Origin: Calcarisporiella thermophila CBS 279.70
Lineage: Eukaryota; Fungi; Calcarisporiellomycota
Length of the DNA stretch: 64,000 nucleotides
Assembly (NCBI RefSeq): GCF_041956535.1
Contig: NW_027192205.1
Location: forward strand, 594,877 to 658,876
Direction of reading: 5' to 3'
The translations under genes were made by a program, and so were the position numbers. A model generated the notes under the pieces. It saw only the letters and a program-made list of their open reading frames with translations, had not been told where the DNA came from and made no database searches. Positions 19,440-32,236 of this stretch are shown here, one piece after another; positions within the stretch are counted from its first letter, which is position 1, and each line of letters begins with the position of its first letter.

Positions 19440-20924
19440 CTAGGTGAAGGGGCTGGGGCATTTAGCATTGCCGTTCGTTTGGTCATACATTTTGGGCCGA
19501 TAGCCAAACCAGGATAAAACCCAGATCTCTAGCGTCAACTCGAATTTCAGGTCGAGCTTAGGGCTCTCCTTGCCTGACTGCTGGAAGCCACACGTAGCCA
19601 GGCCCTGCGAATTGTTTTGTGCCGAGGGGACCGCCACCTTGAGGGGAATTGAGAGCTCCTGCTGTTTCTCCTTCGCCATAAGGGTCACATCGTTGAGCTG
19701 GCCGCTTCCGACCTTTTCGTTGGACTGCGCGTCGAACGTAGCCACCTGCAAGGATCTCAGCTTGACGGGGATCCAGTTTTGCGAGTTATCGATGGTAAAC
19801 TGCAGCTTCCACTCCTGCGTGGCCGTGGAGTCGCCACTGGTGGAGGCGGCCGGCGTGTCGGACGACAGGGCCTTGAAGTGGGCGGAGGGCACGCGAGGCC
19901 AGCAGAAAAAGATCGTGACGCCCAAGCCAAGGAGGAGCACAATGGTGGTGTACAGGCAACTACGGGACCGGCAGCAGCCGCACCATCGCCGCCGGGGCTT
20001 CTTCGCGAGCATGGCGGGGGGGAGGGCAGAGGTGCCGAACGAGCTCGACATGGGCACGGCCGAAGAGGGCTTTACCCCGGGGGGGAAGGCAGACTCGGGA
20101 TGCTCCGAGATGTTGGCAAGGCCAATTCTGTCCGGTTCGTAGGCATGGGGGTTTGCCGTGTAGTAGGGGGGCTGGTCTCTCAGAGTGTCACCCCCCTTTA
20201 GATCACGCATGTCCTCCACCCGCTCGTCATAGTAAAGCATTTGGGCGGGCGGCGGCGAGTAGGGTTCCGAAGAATGATTGCTGTAGGGCAGATACGAATT
20301 AGTGCGGCGAGTTCCGGGGGCGGCGGTGGCGTCGACAGGATCCCGAGTGGTATAAGCGTCGTATGCATACTCGTGATCGCGAGGACCAGGTTGAGAGTTG
20401 GGCGCATTGTACATCGGGTTACCGCCTGGGTGGTGTGTGTAAGCGTCGTAGTGAGGATGGCCGTCATAGTTGGTGTCGTGATATCTATTGTTTTCAGGAG
20501 CCAATGATGGCCAATTGGCCGCAGCATTGGGATCGTTAATTGCCCGATGGCCGAGATATTGATCTGTGGAGAATTCAATACGGGAGGGTGGATGACATGA
20601 GCGCTATTTACTAACATAATACACCCATTCAAAGCTACACTCACCGTAGGCGTGGCCATGGTCCATTTCCCGCCGCATCCACATGTCTCGCTCATTGTAT
20701 TCATCGTATCCGTATTGCCCGTGGGCACCTCGATGATCTGCTTGCTGCGGCGCATAATAATCTTGCTCGTAGTCCAAATGATCCTCTGCATAGTCGGCAT
20801 TGTGCCTTGACGGAGAAGTCGAGGCCTGCAGGAATGGGGGGGATGACTGCGAAGGCGATGACGGCAGCATGGCACGGTGAGGGGGGGCCACAGGCGGCGA
20901 GAGGGGGCGCTGATAATTACTCAT
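19440..20924 (-). CDS. Single-pass membrane protein with LEA-2-like C-terminal domain, 2 exons
   Basis: Tyr/Pro-rich disordered N-terminus; RRRWCGCCRSRSC then a hydrophobic segment ending FFCWPRVP; beta-rich domain (FTIDNSQNWIPVKLRSL); intron ~20644-20565 joins in frame. Confidence 0.75.
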
Positions 20925-23040: not shown

Positions 23041-26000
23041 ATGTCGAGCCTAAACCTCACCAGAGAAGGCGGATCTACCGGCTCACTACATAATCCCGAG
23101 CAGTCGCACGAACATACCAAGCGCAAGAAATCGCGCGATGGGGCCGAGTCATTGCTCTCGTATATATTTGGCGGATCCCTTTCCTCGTCTAATCAGCGTC
23201 CGCCCAACACTCCTGCAGCCATGTCTGCTGCTTCTGCGTACGTCCACGAAAAATCTCACCTCAATTCGTCGGATTGGCCCCGCTCAAACAGCTTTCAGCA
23301 GCTGCCTTACTCGCCGGCCGATGGCTTCAAGCGGCATCGCAAAGAAAAATCAGTTGATTCGCTGGTGGTGCCGAGCGCGGTCGATAACGCGCGTCGGCAT
23401 TCGAACGAAAGCTCTCGACAATTATCCAAGACGCCCTCCTCGAATCCTCCTCCCTACACCTACGCCCCGACCCCAGCCAAATCTTCGCATACCTATGCCA
23501 CCCTCGCCTCGGCAATGCATCTTCCCCCCGCACCTCCCAGTCGCACCAACTCGCGTTCTCGGACGGCTTCTCATTCGACGGATGAGCATCGGCGCAGCAG
23601 TACTACTTCAGACATCGACGAGCAACTGATAAGAGAAATGCAAATGATTGCCGAGCACTCTAGGAGAGTTCCAGACGTGTATTCGCCCCCCAATGTCGAT
23701 GCAAATTTTGCCCAAGAGTATTTCCCCCCTCCGAAGAGCACTCCCCAGAAAGAGAAGCGTGGGTTGCTGTCTCGGTTTGGAAGAAAAAAGAGTAAAGAGC
23801 CTGAAGGTGGATACTGCCGCTTTTGCTTACCCTGTTTTATTGACTAAACCAAACCTTATTTTTCCCTCTCTACCCAACTTGTGGGTCTTTTTTAGCCGAG
23901 CGCGCCCATAGAGTCTCCTTCGACTACATTCCTCCCTATGGTAGCCAATCTCGGGAGGGCTCCATCAGTTCTTACACGGGAGGTAAGGGGTCAGTGGCAT
24001 CCCCTCCATCCGCAGAGCGCGACAATCCCTTTGATATTCCAGCCCGACACTTTGCAGACAAACGCGAAGATAGAACGCGGTATAATGCCAACGCTTTAGC
24101 GGTAGATCAAGGTTGGTTGCAGTCATGAATAGAAAAGAGTCTCTTTCGGATCCATCCTCATTTTACTTTCCACTCCATCGGCAGATTACGATGCTTCACA
24201 CCCCGGAGACGGAGGTTCAAAACACACTGCTCTGCTTGGTTTTCATCGCCCTCGCCAACGTCAGCAAAAATATACGCCCGCCTCTCACCAGAGCCAGTAT
24301 TTGGACGAGAGTTCACCCGAGGTCGAAGGAAACGAGACGGTCTTTCAACGACAGATCTATGAGATAGCGCCTTGGCTGTCGGACTCGAATTTGCCCTCCG
24401 CTTTGCGAGGCCAACCTGCCATAGAGGCATGGGCCACCCCTAGTTCTCTCGAGGGGGGCGATGCCGAAAAGGCGGGCAGTGTTGCGCAGGGAGAGAATCG
24501 CGACGTTATGGCTAGAAATGTAAGTTGTTTTCTCAATTTCCAAGCGTCAGAATGCTTGTCTGAAGTGAGGTGCTTGTGTGTTTTCAGTATTACATCCGAG
24601 TTCATCGCCATGACGGAACCTTTGCCACCGTTTTGATAACACTCCACACTACCGCTGAAGAGCTTCGCCAGATGCTAGCCAAGAAAACATTTATCCCCGA
24701 TATCAGCAAATTTAACATTTATTTTAGCCATAATAACCTGGGTAGCCCTCCCTCTGTTTTACCCTGCGAGTTGTTTATGCGAAAATTAACTGCTTACCCT
24801 ATTTTTTTTTTCCATGGTAGAGCGCGCACTGCACCCACATGAAAAGCCCGCTCTCCTTTTAAAAAATTGGCTAGAGCAGATGGGCTACACTGAACAAGAT
24901 CGAATGGAGGACTTGGGTCGTGAGGATAACTCGAATCTAGTCAAATTCACATTTAGACCCGCCACGATGATCCAGTTATTAGTAAGCTTTCTTCCCTCCT
25001 CCCTCCTACCCTGATAACCATCTCAATCACCTTTATCCTTCTTTATTATTTTATTTATATTAATTTTGTCTACTCTCCTTGTAGGAGGAACACTTGGGTC
25101 TAGAAAGCTTTCAACATATCGATCTGCAAGGCCAGAATCTCCCCACCATCCCTTTCTGGCTCTATCGCCATGCCGAAAATATCGTGACCCTGAACGTGTC
25201 GCACAATCTGGGCGCTGATTTTCCCGAAGATTTTGCACAGGAGTGCATTTCTCTTAGGGACTTGCGGCTCTCCTCCAATGGACTACAGAGGGTGCCCGAG
25301 GGGATCCATCGAGTGTCGACTCTCATTCATCTAGATTTATCGAGCAATCGATTAAAGAATCTTGCCGGGACCGGCATTGAGAGTTTAAACGCGTTGACGA
25401 GCCTCTGGCTCTACAACAATTTGCTGGACACCCTCCCCCTCGCATTCAGGCAGCTGCAGCATTTGTGCACGCTTGACCTGTCGAATAATGAACTTCGAAC
25501 GTTCCCCACCGCGGTCACCAACATCCTGAGTCTCCAAGAGCTCGACCTCGGCCACAATGACATCGAAGAGCTCCCCGACACAATCCGACGGCTAGGGAAT
25601 CTGCGCCACCTGGTGCTCATCGGCAATAGGTTGCGTCACCTCCCAGAAGGCATCTCGGGGCTGGTGCGATTACAGACCCTAGACTTGCGCCAGAATTTAC
25701 TCACGGACACAGAACGGCTGCCGATGATCCCGGAGCTAGAGAAGGTGCAGCTGGACGACAATTTGATAGAACGAGTGCGGGTGCCTCGGTCTCTTCATGA
25801 AATGAGACTCGCCCGTTGCCCCATCTTGGCATTCGATTTTACGGGGGACTCGCACTTGCGCTATCTGGATTTGACGGGATGTCATCTCACCCTCCTTCCA
25901 GACGCCCTCTTCCTCCACCTTCGAGAGCTGGAGCACTTCATCCTGGATGACAACCGGCTCACCTCCCTCCCTCCCCTCATAAAGAATCTCACTCGCTTGG

Positions 26001-29000
26001 TGCGGTTGAGCTGCAACGGCAATGCGCTCACCATGCTCCCCTCCGAAATCGGAGCCCTTAAGACGCTGAAGGAGCTGGAGGTACAGCGCAACAGCCTGAA
26101 AACTCTGCCCCGGGAGATCTGGACCTGCGGCGCCCTGGTCACCCTGAATGCCAGCTCGAACCTCTTGGTGAATTTTCCTGCGCCTCCCATCAATACCTCG
26201 GCTGCAGCCGCATTCGCCTCCACCGTGAAGGCATTCCCCCCCTCCTCCCCCTCCTCCTCCCCTTCTGCCTCGGCCGGCATTTCGCCCTCGGGCCGGAGCG
26301 AATTCGATTTCTTCGCCCCCGGGGCTATGACCGGCTTCAGCTCGGAGCCTAGCTCCGCGGTGGACGACCCCGGGGACGTCAAGTTCAACCCACCCTCCTT
26401 CTTCTCCTCTCCGCGCAATCACCCGCCCCCGCTCGCCTTCTCACTCAACCGCCTTCTCCTCGGCGACAACGGCCTCACCGACGATGTGTTTGGGCCGCTC
26501 TCCCTCTTCACCGAGCTGCGCGTGTTGAACCTGGCGTGGAATGATCTCTATGAGATCCCCGTCGATGGATTGTCCCACCAGCAGCTGCAGGAGCTGCACC
26601 TGTCCGGGAATCAGCTCACCTCGATCCCCACCGACCACATAGAACGGCTGAGCAGTCTGAGGCTGCTCTGCCTCGACGGAAACAAGCTGCAGACGGTGCC
26701 GGCCGAGCTGGGCAAATTGCGCCGCCTCTTGGTGTTGGACGTAGGCTGCAACTCACTTAAGTACAACATCACTAACTGGCCCTACGATTGGAACTGGAAT
26801 TGGAACGTTGGCCTGCATTACCTGAACCTCTCGGGCAACAAGCGCCTGGAGGTCAAGTATCACCATCGGCCGGGCGACGAGGTTCCCCAGGAGAAGCATT
26901 TAGCGGAATTCGACGCGTTGACGCAGCTGAAGGTGTTAGGCCTGATGGACGTCACGCTCATGGTGGGGGTGCCAGATGAGACGGAGGATAGGCGTATTCG
27001 CACGACCCCATCGGAGGTGAACTGCATGACGTACGGGATGGCCGACACACTCTCGGCCTCCAACCGGTTGGCGACCTGGGACCTTGTCATCCCGCGGTTC
27101 CGCGGGCGGGACGACGAGTGCTTGTTCGCGTTGTTCGAAGGCCGGCTCAGCGGAGGCGGCAGCGGTGGGTGCAAGCTTGCCAAACAGTTGAATGATTCCC
27201 TCCACTACCGCTTCAGCGACGAGCTGGGCCAGGGGGAGGAGGAGGAGGAGACCACGGATATCCCCACGGCACTGCGGCGCACCTTCCTGGGCCTGAACCG
27301 CGACGTGGCGGCGATCGGAATCGCCGAGCGGTCGGGCGCATGCGCGGCCGTGGCCTACATCAAAAAGACGCGCCTCTACGTGGCCAATGTTGGCAACGTG
27401 CAAGCGGTGCTGGCGCGTAAAGGCAGGGAGACGGTCACCCTGACGCCGGAGCATCTTCCGCGCGTCGAGCGGGCCCGAACGAGAGGGGCCGGTGCGTATC
27501 TGACGCGGGAGCAGCTGTTAAACGGGGAGCTGGACGTGTCGAGGGCGTTCGGGCACTTTTCGCACTGCCCAGCCATCAATGCGAACCCGTCCGTGACCAC
27601 GTGGGAGCTGACGGCCCAGGACGAGTTTCTGATCCTGGGGACGGCCGGGCTCTGGTCGCAACTGCCGCCCTCGAACGCCGTCGATGTGGTGCGGACGGAG
27701 CGGGAGGATATCATGCGTGCTGCGCACAAACTGCGCGACTTTGCGGTGGCCTACGGGGCCGACAACGTCACCGTCATGATCATCGGAGTGGGGGGCCTTT
27801 TCGAGGAGAACCGCAAGCTCGCCCGCCAGAAGGTCGACCCCCAGACCAACTACGGAGCCAACACCGTGGGGCGGTTGATCACCGACCCGGATTTTGCCCA
27901 CCATGGCAAGCGTCGGCGCGTGCGCGAGGGGGCCGCGGCCGGCGATTTGATGCTACGCGAGGTCGAACCGCCCGTGGGAGAGGTGGCCCTCGTCTTCACC
28001 GACATCAAGAGCTCGACGGCCCTGTGGGACGCCGTGCCCACCGCGATGCGCTCGGCCATCAAGGAGCACAACGCGATCATGCGCCGGCAGTTGGACGCGA
28101 TGGGGGGATACGAGGTCCGAACGGAGGGCGACGCGTTCATGGTGTCATTCCCGAGCGTGACTGCGGCGATGCTCTTTTGCTTTACGGTGCAGCTGGAGCT
28201 GCTGAGGGCGGATTGGCCGGTGGAGATCTTGGAGACCGAGGAGTGCCGTGAAGTGGTGGAGGAGTTGGATGAGGAGGAGAAGGAGGACGGGGAGGAGGAG
28301 GTGGCGGCGGCGGAGGAACTGGTCGACGAGAACGGCCATGGCAACGGGTCCTCGGCGGAGGAGTCCGGCAGTGGGGTTGCGAATGGGGCCATGGGGCCGG
28401 ATCAGGGGGAGGCGAGGGACCGGCGGTCAAATCGCGAGAATGGCTCGCTCTCCAACTTGGCGAACGGGCACCGGCCCAGGGCTAGGAAAGGGGCTACCCT
28501 GTACCGCGGGCTGTCGGTTCGCATGGGCATCCACTGGGGCTCGCCGGTGTGTGAGGTAGACCCCATCACCCAGCGTATGGGCTACTTCGGGCCGATGGTG
28601 AACCGTGCCTCGCGAGTGTGCAACGTGGCGGATGGGGGTCAGATTAGTGTCTCGCGGGATGTGATGGTGGAGCTGCATGCGATCGAGGAGGCCCTGGCCT
28701 CGGAGGGGTCCCAGGAGGAGGAGGAGGAAGAGGAGCAGGATCGAAGGCGCCGGAAGCTGGCGCGGGATGCGATTGCGCTGCGCGAGCTCGGGGTGTGCAT
28801 CGTGCATCTGGGCGAGCGCAAGCTCAAAGGGCTTGAGACCCCCGAGGACGTGACGCTAGTGTATCCCCGGGCGCTGTCGGGGCGAGTGAAGCGGGTGATC
28901 GGCGAGAATCGAGTGTCAGCGCAAGGCCTGGTGGAGTCGGATTCCTTCAAGGCGAGCTGCATCAACCTGTTCGGGCAGGCCAAAGCCCCCCTCGTGGATC

Positions 29001-29326
29001 CGGAGCTGGTGCGGACGCTCGGCTACCTTTGTTTGCGCCTCGAGCGTGTCACGGCCGGCAACCCCTCCAAATCGTCTCCCCGGCACGACTACATGGGCCG
29101 GATGATGACGGCCCACATCAAGGAGGAAGCGAAGGAGGAGGATCTGCTGCGGATCCTGGAGAATCTGATTGGGCGCGTGGAGAACATCACCAGCACCCTG
29201 TATCTGGCGAAGGTGGGCAGGTTCGTGCAGACGCTGCAGGAGGTCGGGCAGGCCGCCGGCATGGATGGGGCAGCCGTGTTGAGGGCGCTGGTTGGAAGCG
29301 CCCAGGCGGAAGAGCTTTTTGGCTAG
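23041..29326 (+). CDS. CYR1: Fungal adenylate cyclase architecture (Galpha-binding IAPW, Ras-association, LRR, PP2C-like, class III cyclase), multi-exon
   Basis: EIAPWL; RA domain YYIRVHRHDGTFATV; many LRRs; YNITNWPYDWNWNWN; PP2C-like region; catalytic VALVFTDIKSST, TEGDAFMV, GLSVRMGIHWG, YFGPMVNRASRV. Confidence 0.95.
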
Positions 29327-30004
29327 AAGATTTTCACACCTGTACGATACATACACACTTCTCCTCCATGGTTCAATTCTTTTTTTTTTTTCGTGGGGGA
29401 GAGGGGGGGAGGGCTAAGTTGTTTACTGTTCTATTTATGCTGTATTTCTTCGTTTCTCGCTTTCCCTTCTTCCCTCTCTCTTATTTGTGATGTGTTATTT
29501 CTTTGGTGCCCTCTTGTCTGCGCTGTCTTTTTCTTTGGAATTCCTTCTATCTTTTTTTTTTTGTTGTTTTCACTCTTAATTTAGCTTAAGCAGCCCTATT
29601 TAACTTGTGACAAGCCTGTTTATTAATGTTATTTCGCCAGTGTTTCCTATTTATTATAAGATAGAGTGGTTTGCTGCTATTTCTTCTAGAACGCTCAGGC
29701 ATTGCCGAAAAGTCGAGAACGCATCCATCCTTAGCGAGATATGATTGAAAGCAACCCTTCCTAAAGAGGCTTAAGTGTTATTAGGTAGATTCGCCTCTTC
29801 AAGACTCTTACGAAATTGCCACCACAACTGGAAAAAAAAGCCTCCGCTCTCTCTTGTGATAAGAGTATTATTGATCATAGAACCTTGTTTTCTGAAGAGA
29901 AGGGGGACCGGTTGATTCTTTCGTTGTTTCCCAGTCTTTACCTTGCAGACGCCCTTACCACACACTCGCCGACCGTTTCACCCTTGCTGCACCCCGCATG
30001 CTCT

Positions 30005-32236
30005 ATGGATCCTAGCAGCCCGCTCAACTCCATCACATCCATATCGTCGACTAGCACCTATCTTGATCACGCCTCTACCGCCAACTTCCCCTCCAGCCTC
30101 AACCGATCCGGGAAATATCCCCTTGACGAATCGCTGGTTCGCGAGTGGCTCTCCACCTCGGCCCACGATCCATTCCTGCCCCTGGCCAACCCTGTCTCCC
30201 GCAAATCCTATGCCCGACTCATCGCGCAGATGTCACGCCTCTGCTCCCATGTTTACACTAAAGGCCTATTGGAGGCCCAAGGATTCGATGTTGTCATCCG
30301 CATTCCGGCCTGGAACAAGGAGTTTCGGCTGCACAAATTGGTGCTCTCGCAAAATGCCTTCTTCGATCGGCTGCTGCTGGGCCGATGGAAGGAGGCGGGG
30401 GAGGAGTGCGTGGAGCTCCACTTTGATGACACCAACATCACCCCTGAGGTAAGCTGCCTCGATTTCAAGCTCGATTGAAAGTATATGAGCTGCATGCTCA
30501 AATCGATTTTATTTTTATTTCCTGAACCCCTCTTGTTCGCGCAGTCCTTCCATATAGCGATAGGAAAGCTCTATGGCCGCCTAGAAGACCCAATCCATGA
30601 CCAGAATGTATGTTCCCTCCTTGCAACCGCCTGCTTCCTGCAAATGGACGATTTCTCCGACGCCTGTGCCGAATATATCCTGCGTACTCTGTCGCCCTCC
30701 AATGTGGCCAAGTACCTGAGTTTTGTCGACGGCCATTGCTACGGTTCGGTTTCGGCGCGCATCGTCGAGGCGGCTTTCACCTATCTGTGCCGGGATGCCT
30801 ATTCCGATCCGAGGTTGCGGAGCGCATTGGTCGAGATTCCGATCCAATGGCTCCAGCGACTGGTGGAATCGGATTTTTTTTGGGTGCCTGGAGAGTACGA
30901 GCGGTATAGCTTCGTGAAAGAGATCGTGGGTCTGCGCAGGGAGAAGCTGCGCTTGAGAAAGGCCAAGGGAGGATCGAAAGCGGCTTCAGGCCGAGATACT
31001 AATAGCCGCGTGGGTTCTAAGGGAAATGAGGGTGGAGTGAAGGAGACGAGTGAAAGAGTCAGCATGGAGTGTACCAAGGAGCAACATTGGGTAAACATGG
31101 GTAGCATGAGTGGGGAGGGGGAGTCGACTCCTCAGAAGGAGAGGAGGGAAGACGGTGGAGGGGTGGAGCATGTAGAGAACGCAGAAGGATTGCACAAGGA
31201 GGAGATGGCTGTGGAAGAGGAAGAAGAAGGAGAGGAAGAGGAGGAGAAGGAGGAGGAAGATGAAGACGAGGCTGAAGAAGACGAGGAGCCATTTTACCTC
31301 GAGATGTTTGCCCACGCCATCATCTATGCCCACATGTCATTCGAGGAGCTGAACTCGATTAAACGCGATATCGATCCCGCCACCGGCAAGCCATACGTCC
31401 CTGACGACATCATCAAGGATGCGCTCTGGCAACAGGTCGAGCTTCGCACCCGTATCATGGCAGCGTCGGAGACCGACGAGAAACTCGGGATTGTCGTCGG
31501 CGAGCACGAACCACACCCCACCCGCCATATAATTCCCGATGCAGATTACACCAAAGTTGGGGAGAGCATTGCGAATGCCACGTCTGCGTCCCACCAGCAC
31601 CAGCACCAGCGCCAGCAGGATGAGAAGGAGAAGCCCCGCCGGGAATACTCGCGGTTTGCCCCCTTCCGGTTCAGCATCGAGTTCACGGACGTGAGTGCCC
31701 TCAAGGAGAAGCACCGGGTCTACTCGCACACCGTCTTCTATGCTGGCTCCAACTGGAACCTCTACATCCAGAAAATACGGGGGCCGCGACGAAACATGCA
31801 GCTTGGCGTGTATCTCCACCGGCAGAGCTCCTCTCCCGATTCAGCGGCCGGCGAGCTGGTGGTGGTGGAGAGAGAGCTGGATGGGACCACAACGACCACA
31901 AGGACCTCGCTGGGGGGCTCCGGGACCTCGCACTTCTCCCTCTACACCGATCGGCGGCTCCGGGTGAAGACCTGGTTCAAGATCGTGTGCGCGTCCCACG
32001 GCCCTAGCCACATGCTAACGCAGTTCCAGAGCACTCCTGATGATTTCAAGCTGATGCAATCATGGGTAAATGGGGGATGGAAGGAGGAGGGGGAGTCAAA
32101 AATGATCTCATTCTAATGCCTATTTTGCTTTTCTTCATAGGGCTGGAGAAGCACGACTCTGTGTAGTGAGGACTATTCCGCGTCGGAGGGAAATCCGGAC
32201 GTGCTGCGATTCTCCATAGTGATGGGGCATGTGTAG
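30005..32236 (+). CDS. BTB/POZ-domain protein (germ cell-less-like) with C-terminal MATH-like domain, 3 exons
   Basis: EFRLHKLVLSQNAFFDRLL..WKE..LHFDDTNIT; LLATACFL; PFRFSIEF, VFYAGSNWNLYIQK, QLGVYLHRQ, PDDFKLMQSW/GWRS, LRFSIVMGHV. Confidence 0.88.

Follow-up and report, generated by a model that had tools for sequence, protein, structure and literature searches.

A Cyr1-type cyclase paralogue of Calcarisporiella thermophila with arginine and glycine at the base-selecting positions

Cyclic AMP (cAMP) signalling in fungi is usually described as the work of one enzyme, Cyr1, with an invariant Lys/Asp pocket. Here we describe a Cyr1-type gene from the thermophilic fungus Calcarisporiella thermophila CBS 279.70 (Mucoromycota) in which this Lys is replaced by Arg and this Asp by Gly. 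The gene lies at 23041-29326 on the forward strand of a stretch of 64,000 nucleotides (positions 594,877 to 658,876 of contig NW_027192205.1), which we call the window and to which the coordinates below refer. It corresponds to the public protein VTP21DRAFT_2857 (P0001; 1,957 amino acids, 100% match). We refer to it as the window copy or the R/G copy, and to the usual pair as K/D.

Class III cyclases act as head-to-tail dimers with two sites, and each site consists of two Asp from one subunit and the pocket pair and Asn/Arg from the other (PMC2987819). The pocket pair is K/D in adenylate cyclases, while guanylate cyclases have Glu at the first position and C/S/T/H/A/G, never Asp, at the second; in Cya2 the pair is E/G (PMC4215837). 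The D157G mutant of Ma1120 had a kcat about 2.7-fold lower, its kcat/Km for ATP was not lowered, and its Km for GTP was about 16-fold higher (PMC4215837). Since this mutant remains ATP-preferring, the change from Asp to Gly alone does not make a guanylate cyclase. In Candida albicans Cyr1 the corresponding Lys is Lys1373 (the mutagenic primer reads G-Y-E-V-A-T-E-G-D), and it is required for both substrate binding and the CO2 response (PMC2987819). The authors proposed that Lys1373 binds bicarbonate in the second site of the Cyr1 homodimer, and wild-type/K1373A heterodimers kept their basal activity while their CO2 response was reduced (PMC2987819). The K646 mutant of CyaB1 loses its CO2 response (PMC2613629).

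The altered base-selecting pair

An initial annotation had described the window gene as a Cyr1-type cyclase with an intact catalytic set and with both base-selecting residues replaced, and Pfam and the codons themselves bear this out. The residues concerned are the following (evidence in brackets; ORF, open reading frame):

28001-28003 (+): first metal-binding Asp (VFTDIK), kept, codon gac (ORF translation, alignment)
28118-28120 (+): Arg (CGA) replacing the invariant Lys that contacts base and bicarbonate and is equivalent to C. albicans Lys1373; motif YEV-R-TEGD (alignments)
28130-28132 (+): second metal-binding Asp (TEGDAF), kept, codon gac (ORF translation, alignment)
28580-28582 (+): Gly (GGC) replacing the invariant Asp that contacts adenine N6; motif QRM-G-YFG (alignments)
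28601-28615 (+): transition-state Asn (28601-28603) and Arg (28613-28615), VNRASR, kept (ORF translation, alignment)

In the alignment to the solved Trypanosoma brucei cyclases GRESAG4.1/4.3, Arg of the window copy is opposite the Lys of YEVKTVGD and Gly is opposite the Asp of YDYYG, and thus these two residues are the base-selecting pair. The Cyr1 family consensus at the two sites is GGYEVKTEGDAFM and RMDYFGPvVN. The window copy has both metal-binding Asp of class III cyclases (FTDIK, EGDAF) and the transition-state Asn/Arg (VNRASR). The Lys/Asp (or Lys/Thr) pair of adenylate cyclases is absent, and the protein departs from the Cyr1 signature DKDDNR at the six key positions and reads DRDGNR. 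By the published rule for guanylate cyclases, it does not have the Glu at the first specificity position, where it carries Arg, but it does have one of the non-Asp residues (C/S/T/H/A/G) at the second, where it carries Gly (PMC4215837). The double change is confirmed as real in this assembly and is far from typical.

An assembly or base-calling artefact at both codons is very unlikely. The codons are known from one assembly alone, but an artefact would have to account for three wrong bases spread over two codons, the reading frame around them is clean and the public gene model is identical. A sequencing slip in particular is unlikely, because two bases separate CGA from AAR and the frame of 1,410 codons at 25094-29326 (+), which is the last exon of VTP21DRAFT_2857, is unbroken.

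To place the pair among its relatives, 306 single-domain Cyr1-like proteins were gathered by a search of 1.84 billion representative proteins and by two word-index searches. The six key positions read DKDDNR in 298 of them. Only two proteins depart at the Lys or the Asp, namely the window copy (DRDGNR) and a protein from Bifiguratus adelaidae (DRDDNR). As the initial annotation had hoped, R/G marks a constrained, divergent paralogue, described below; among the 306 proteins the pair occurred in this one copy.

The change is also confined to the pocket. In the cyclase domain 49 columns are invariant in 117 other Cyr1 domains, and the R/G copy keeps 47 of them, the sole departures being the Lys and the Asp. 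With only 2 of the 49 columns changed, the change looks specific rather than a sign of decay, as had been suggested earlier. When the PP2C-like domain and the C-terminus are included, the window copy keeps 96 of 99 invariant columns, and it departs at 31 of the 260 columns with a conservation of 90% or more. In the same alignment, ten other members of the family depart at more of these columns, yet all of them keep K/D.

A duplicated Cyr1 gene under constraint

The genome of C. thermophila (28.2 Mb) has exactly two cyclase domains, and no further PF00211 match was found in it even at E 10. The second domain is on contig 24 and belongs to VTP21DRAFT_5944 (P0002; 1,875 amino acids), which has the canonical motifs YEV-K-TEGD and QRM-D-YFG. 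The second, canonical copy for which the initial annotation proposed to look thus exists. The best identity of the window copy over the PP2C-like domain, the cyclase domain and the C-terminus, 55-56%, is also to this paralogue.

Trees of the region from PP2C to the C-terminus were made by a quick method from subsets of 42 and 30 rows out of 118 homologues, with long-branch rows flagged. The window copy was placed inside the Mucoromycota Cyr1 sequences, where it and VTP21DRAFT_5944 are sister paralogues (SH-aLRT 96-97), a placement that carries the caveat that the window copy is a long row whose amino-acid composition was flagged as deviating from that of the other rows. Because the two Calcarisporiella copies are sisters, the duplication is lineage-specific. 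The end branch of the window copy is 1.27-1.36 and that of its sister is 0.47, which makes it about three times longer.

The long branch is not accompanied by signs of decay. The pairwise ratio of nonsynonymous to synonymous substitution rates (dN/dS) between the two copies is about 0.15-0.18, with dS near saturation, and judging from this ratio VTP21DRAFT_2857 is not decaying but held by purifying selection. The possibility of a pseudogene was ruled out by the invariant columns that are kept and by dN/dS.

The composition of the gene is unusual as well. No stretch of the window is richer in GC than the part of the gene at 25094-29323 (0.636 versus 0.48 overall), and GC content at third codon positions (GC3) climbs along this part from 0.66 to 0.88. 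The share of Gly, Ala, Arg and Pro (GARP) in the window protein is near the family maximum. A redundant copy under relaxed constraint might have drifted through the easiest AT-to-GC replacements and ended as a cyclase of little or almost no activity that gained no new role. Both changes are indeed AT-to-GC (AAR to CGA and GAY to GGC), GC3 of the exon is 0.80-0.88 versus 0.65-0.69 in the paralogue, the high GARP share and the flagged composition point the same way, and Arg is the commonest replacement of this Lys in degenerate domains elsewhere. However, the copy has kept 47 of the 49 invariant columns, its dN/dS does not exceed about 0.18, the reading frame of 1,957 codons is intact, and many other invariant codons could have shifted towards GC and did not. 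We consider such drift quite improbable.

VTP21DRAFT_2857 is a full Cyr1-type cyclase with the order RA, leucine-rich repeat (LRR), PP2C and cyclase (Pfam). Together with the gene model and the C-terminal alignment, this gives the complete Cyr1-type architecture in one protein, including the conserved C-terminus:

23041-29326 (+): whole gene VTP21DRAFT_2857 (tblastn of the protein on the window; 100% protein match)
~23041-23805, 23895-24116, 24184-24981 (with intron(s) within) and ~25067-29326 (+): exons (tblastn)
24570-25011 (+): RA domain, split by an intron (Pfam RA_3 and RA_2 on two ORF pieces, E 1e-7 and 5e-15)
25334-26699 (+): LRR region (Pfam LRR_8, LRR_4 and LRR_14, E 1e-29 to 1e-38)
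27164-27766 (+): PP2C-like domain (Pfam PP2C, E 1.6e-40)
27971-28678 (+): class III cyclase catalytic domain (Pfam Guanylate_cyc, E 7e-26; AlphaFold2 core pLDDT >90; Foldseek)
28220-28507 (+): loop between DWP and GLSVRMG, 96 amino acids versus a family median of 22, with an acidic, Gly-rich insert of about 74 amino acids that is predicted to be disordered (alignment, AlphaFold2)
28679-29323 (+): conserved C-terminal region with the LGYLCLRLERV motif, common to Cyr1 proteins (aligned with P0002 and with the Bifiguratus protein P0186)

The catalytic domain matched PF00211 with 91.4 bits against a curated cut-off of 21.9, and the core of its AlphaFold2 model is confident (pLDDT >90). The top Foldseek matches of the model were 1FX4/1FX2, Rv1900c and Ma1120, with a probability of 1.00 to 1FX4, 1YBU and 4WP9. 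An NCBIfam scan gave a sub-threshold LipJ match only. The loop insert is Glu- and Gly-rich and was modelled as disordered. A few K/D homologues carry even longer inserts in the same DWP-GLSVRMG loop, and thus the insert need not affect catalysis.

The LRR, PP2C and cyclase domains of the window copy are encoded by one intronless exon of 4.2 kb (25067-29326). VTP21DRAFT_5944 has introns at amino acids 1080/1081 (before NWNLGLKYLN) and 1444, and both are absent from the window copy; the Bifiguratus gene is also interrupted at the NWNL position. Since the window copy has lost at least two 3' introns and has retained its 5' introns, cDNA-mediated intron loss is suggested. The long ORFs that flank the cyclase gene in the window, at 19440-20875 (-) and 29816-32116 (+) (354, 225, 220 and 543 amino acids), had no Pfam match.

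Elsewhere in the genome there are four genes for class I cyclic-nucleotide phosphodiesterases (C22:347453, C26:326747, C19:24068 and C21:298796) and two genes similar to the regulatory subunit of protein kinase A (PKA-R-like; C4:444449 and C4:803407). The whole cyclic-nucleotide toolkit is duplicated in C. thermophila, not the cyclase alone.

Probable activity, product and regulation of the R/G copy

The R/G copy is probably an active, specialised Cyr1 paralogue that has a remodelled base/bicarbonate pocket and still makes cAMP. While its architecture, its paralogy, the constraint on it and the specificity of the two changes are established by the analyses above, we infer its catalytic activity, its product and a change in its regulation from the sequence. 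It would be a functional, lineage-specific duplicate of the Ras-regulated Cyr1, whose rate of evolution was about three times that of its canonical sister while its catalytic apparatus stayed whole. Like every class III cyclase it would act as a head-to-tail dimer, and the R/G site would still bind and cyclise a nucleoside triphosphate (NTP). Turnover at this site is suggested by the Asn/Arg, which are purely catalytic and were kept over about 1.3 changes per site; in an idle half-site they should have drifted, as they have in most R/G domains of diplonemids. From the roles of the Lys and the Asp, Arg would retain the positive, hydrogen-bond-donating character of Lys, and Gly would remove the acceptor for the adenine amino group. 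ATP would still be used, probably with weaker or relaxed base discrimination, and regulation may be altered at the pocket that serves the CO2/bicarbonate response in Cyr1.

Several points weigh against this interpretation. The Lys and the Asp are invariant in about 300 Cyr1-type domains, some of them more divergent than the window copy, and thus R/G is unlikely to be equivalent to K/D for normal ATP use. K1373A of C. albicans Cyr1 is inactive alone, though the replacement there is Ala, not Arg (PMC2987819). The role of the Lys as a CO2 site is disputed, since Rv1625c K296A and Slr1991 K177A remain CO2-responsive (PMC2613629). Lastly, the literature searched yielded no assayed enzyme with R/G, nor any assayed class III cyclase that has Arg in place of this Lys.

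The second departure among the relatives bears on the Arg. The protein of B. adelaidae (OZJ05762.1; P0186) comes from a full-length Cyr1-type gene (RA-LRR, then PP2C-cyclase) that reads GGYEIRTEGD and keeps the Asp (RMDYYG). The gene is at L022:5102-10398 (MVBO01000010.1) and is annotated only as a partial protein of 773 amino acids, with the upstream RA-LRR exon outside the model. Its branch is long (1.41) and the window copy is not its sister, which indicates that the change from Lys to Arg arose twice. A second Bifiguratus cyclase was not found in two protein searches, whose length windows took in models of 425 amino acids or more. If this copy is the sole cyclase there, ordinary cAMP synthesis is compatible with an Arg in place of the Lys.

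The pair itself recurs in diplonemids (Diplonema, Sulcionema and others), which have proteins with several tandem cyclase domains. The diplonemid and metagenomic proteins P0246, P0233, P0157, P0124, P0131 and P0135 contain two to six tandem domains of the GRESAG4/Cyr1 type, in which DKDDNR and degenerate domains alternate, and the Arg/Gly pair is present in several of the latter. Some diplonemid domains share the motifs GYEVRTEGDAFM and GRMGYxGP with the window copy, and they are mostly beside a DKDDNR domain. In most of the R/G domains the Asn or the Arg is gone, which is also seen in the degenerate halves of pseudoheterodimers. The second domain of Sulcionema P0233 is DRDGNR, and the sole half-site with complete Asn/Arg in that protein is of the R/G type. 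Among 431 domain matches Arg was the commonest replacement of Lys, and Gly at the Asp position occurred only together with Arg (6/39 versus 0/392), although these counts are not phylogenetically independent.

Two alternatives had been missed by the initial annotation: the Lys as a proposed bicarbonate/CO2 site, and the occurrence of R/G domains elsewhere as partners of K/D domains. Both enter the possibility that the R/G copy pairs with its canonical paralogue. Such a heterodimer would have one K/D catalytic site, to which the R/G copy gives its metal-binding Asp and the canonical copy its K/D/N/R, and one mainly regulatory R/G site for bicarbonate or another ligand. It would represent an early stage of the path from homodimer to pseudoheterodimer seen in the mammalian membrane and soluble cyclases. 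The diplonemid chains P0246 (Diplonema papillatum), P0157 and P0124 join YEVRTEGD/RMGY domains with DKDDNR domains, and the restriction of Gly to Arg-bearing domains is in line with this, although here again the diplonemid counts are not independent. Both metal-binding Asp are kept, as the role requires, and the canonical paralogue exists. The second site of Candida Cyr1 was proposed to be regulatory via the same Lys, and wild-type/K1373A dimers were active but less CO2-responsive (PMC2987819). However, the R/G half-site still has its Asn/Arg after about 1.3 changes per site, while most diplonemid R/G domains lost one of them. A predicted complex between the R/G and the K/D domains scored 0.06, which is not evidence either way. 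Pairing of the two copies is the main alternative, if a rather unlikely one.

The initial annotation had raised a non-cAMP cyclase, in which the R/G pocket takes GTP, a pyrimidine NTP or several NTPs and produces a Ras-controlled messenger other than cAMP. Only the base-contacting residues changed among the invariant columns while all catalytic residues were kept, the canonical copy remains for cAMP supply, and the only half-site with complete Asn/Arg in Sulcionema P0233 is R/G. Arg is able to donate hydrogen bonds to guanine O6/N7 or to pyrimidine carbonyls and might contact these bases in the pocket. ATP, however, is far more abundant in cells than the other NTPs. The guanylate cyclase Cya2 (E/G) has Gly at the second position, where Asp is never kept by enzymes of this type, but known guanylate cyclases have Glu and not a cationic residue at the first position (PMC4215837). 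Moreover, Ma1120 D157G bound GTP worse, with the Km about 16 times higher (PMC4215837), and the Bifiguratus Cyr1 shows the same change from Lys to Arg. Kinship with the pyrimidine cyclase PycC was rejected, as the similarity is marginal (about 15 bits, E 0.002-0.005) and the K/D paralogue is just as similar. The claim of a non-cAMP cyclase is therefore not supported.

A receptor for cyclic GMP (cGMP) was also looked for. Among the cyclic-nucleotide-binding proteins of C. thermophila no clear cGMP-specific receptor was seen: the sites of the PKA-R-like proteins read RAAT, and one F-box protein with two cyclic-nucleotide-binding domains and LRR reads RTAS, which is ambiguous. RTAS is found in cAMP-preferring channels as well. 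The gene for the F-box protein is on contig 8 at about 720000-722700 (L021:3017-5691, -) and encodes two cyclic-nucleotide-binding domains followed by the F-box and the leucine-rich repeats, with the phosphate-binding cassette FGEISVLTNVPRTASIRA. Its neighbours are genes for a G-alpha protein (L021:1092-2249, -) and for a trehalose-phosphate synthase/phosphatase.

That the product has really changed is doubtful, the position of the two changes being the only positive sign. A substrate that was switched or widened would mean that a non-flagellated fungus has a Cyr1 paralogue under Ras control whose product is cGMP or some cyclic nucleotide other than cAMP, which we regard as unlikely. If it were true, R/G would be a new class III specificity pair that arose independently in the multi-cyclase proteins of diplonemids.

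Comparison with described cyclases

VTP21DRAFT_2857 is a natural Cyr1 duplicate that is altered in exactly the base pocket and in nothing else among the invariant positions of its cyclase domain, and the canonical copy is retained beside it. It is thus a clean system for the roles of the Lys and the Asp in a Cyr1-type enzyme, which may be base selection, CO2/bicarbonate sensing, or both. It also bears on how a homodimeric cyclase starts to become a heterodimer with one regulatory site, and on whether Arg/Gly, which recurs in diplonemid cyclases, is a third specificity pair. Should the enzyme make cAMP alone, the gene still sets limits on the trust that can be placed in predicting cyclase specificity from sequence.

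Cyr1/Cdc35-type cyclases such as C. albicans Cyr1p share with the window copy the order of RA, LRR, PP2C-like domain, cyclase and C-terminus and the motifs GGYEV-x-TEGDAFM and RM-x-YFGPMVN. Unlike C. albicans Cyr1p, the window copy has Arg for Lys1373 and Gly for the paired Asp, and unlike the Cyr1/Cdc35 type in general it has an insert of about 74 amino acids and a branch about three times longer, and is an additional copy, whereas the majority of fungi carry a single one. Its own paralogue VTP21DRAFT_5944 has the same architecture, is 55-56% identical and is its sister in the trees, but is DKDDNR, has a short branch and the introns at amino acids 1080/1081 and 1444, and lacks the insert. The Bifiguratus Cyr1 resembles the window copy in being full-length, in the change from Lys to Arg, in its long branch and in its kept catalytic residues; it differs in that the Asp is kept and in that it is not sister to the window copy, its change being independent.

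The nearest solved structures, both by sequence (E 6e-25) and by fold, are T. brucei GRESAG4.1/4.3 (1FX2, 1FX4). These have an extra subdomain at the same loop as the insert of the window copy, but they are receptor-type K/D enzymes and are about 25% identical to it. The diplonemid R/G domains (for example, Diplonema papillatum KAJ9450158.1, P0246, and Sulcionema P0233) share the local motifs and belong to the same class III subfamily as GRESAG4 and Cyr1, but they are inside multi-cyclase chains, mostly lack Asn or Arg and have a different origin. Cya2 and Ma1120 D157G have Gly at the second specificity position like the window copy, while at the first Cya2 has Glu rather than Arg and the ATP-preferring Ma1120 D157G keeps Lys. 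Pycsar PycC has in common with the window copy the class III fold and the catalytic motifs.

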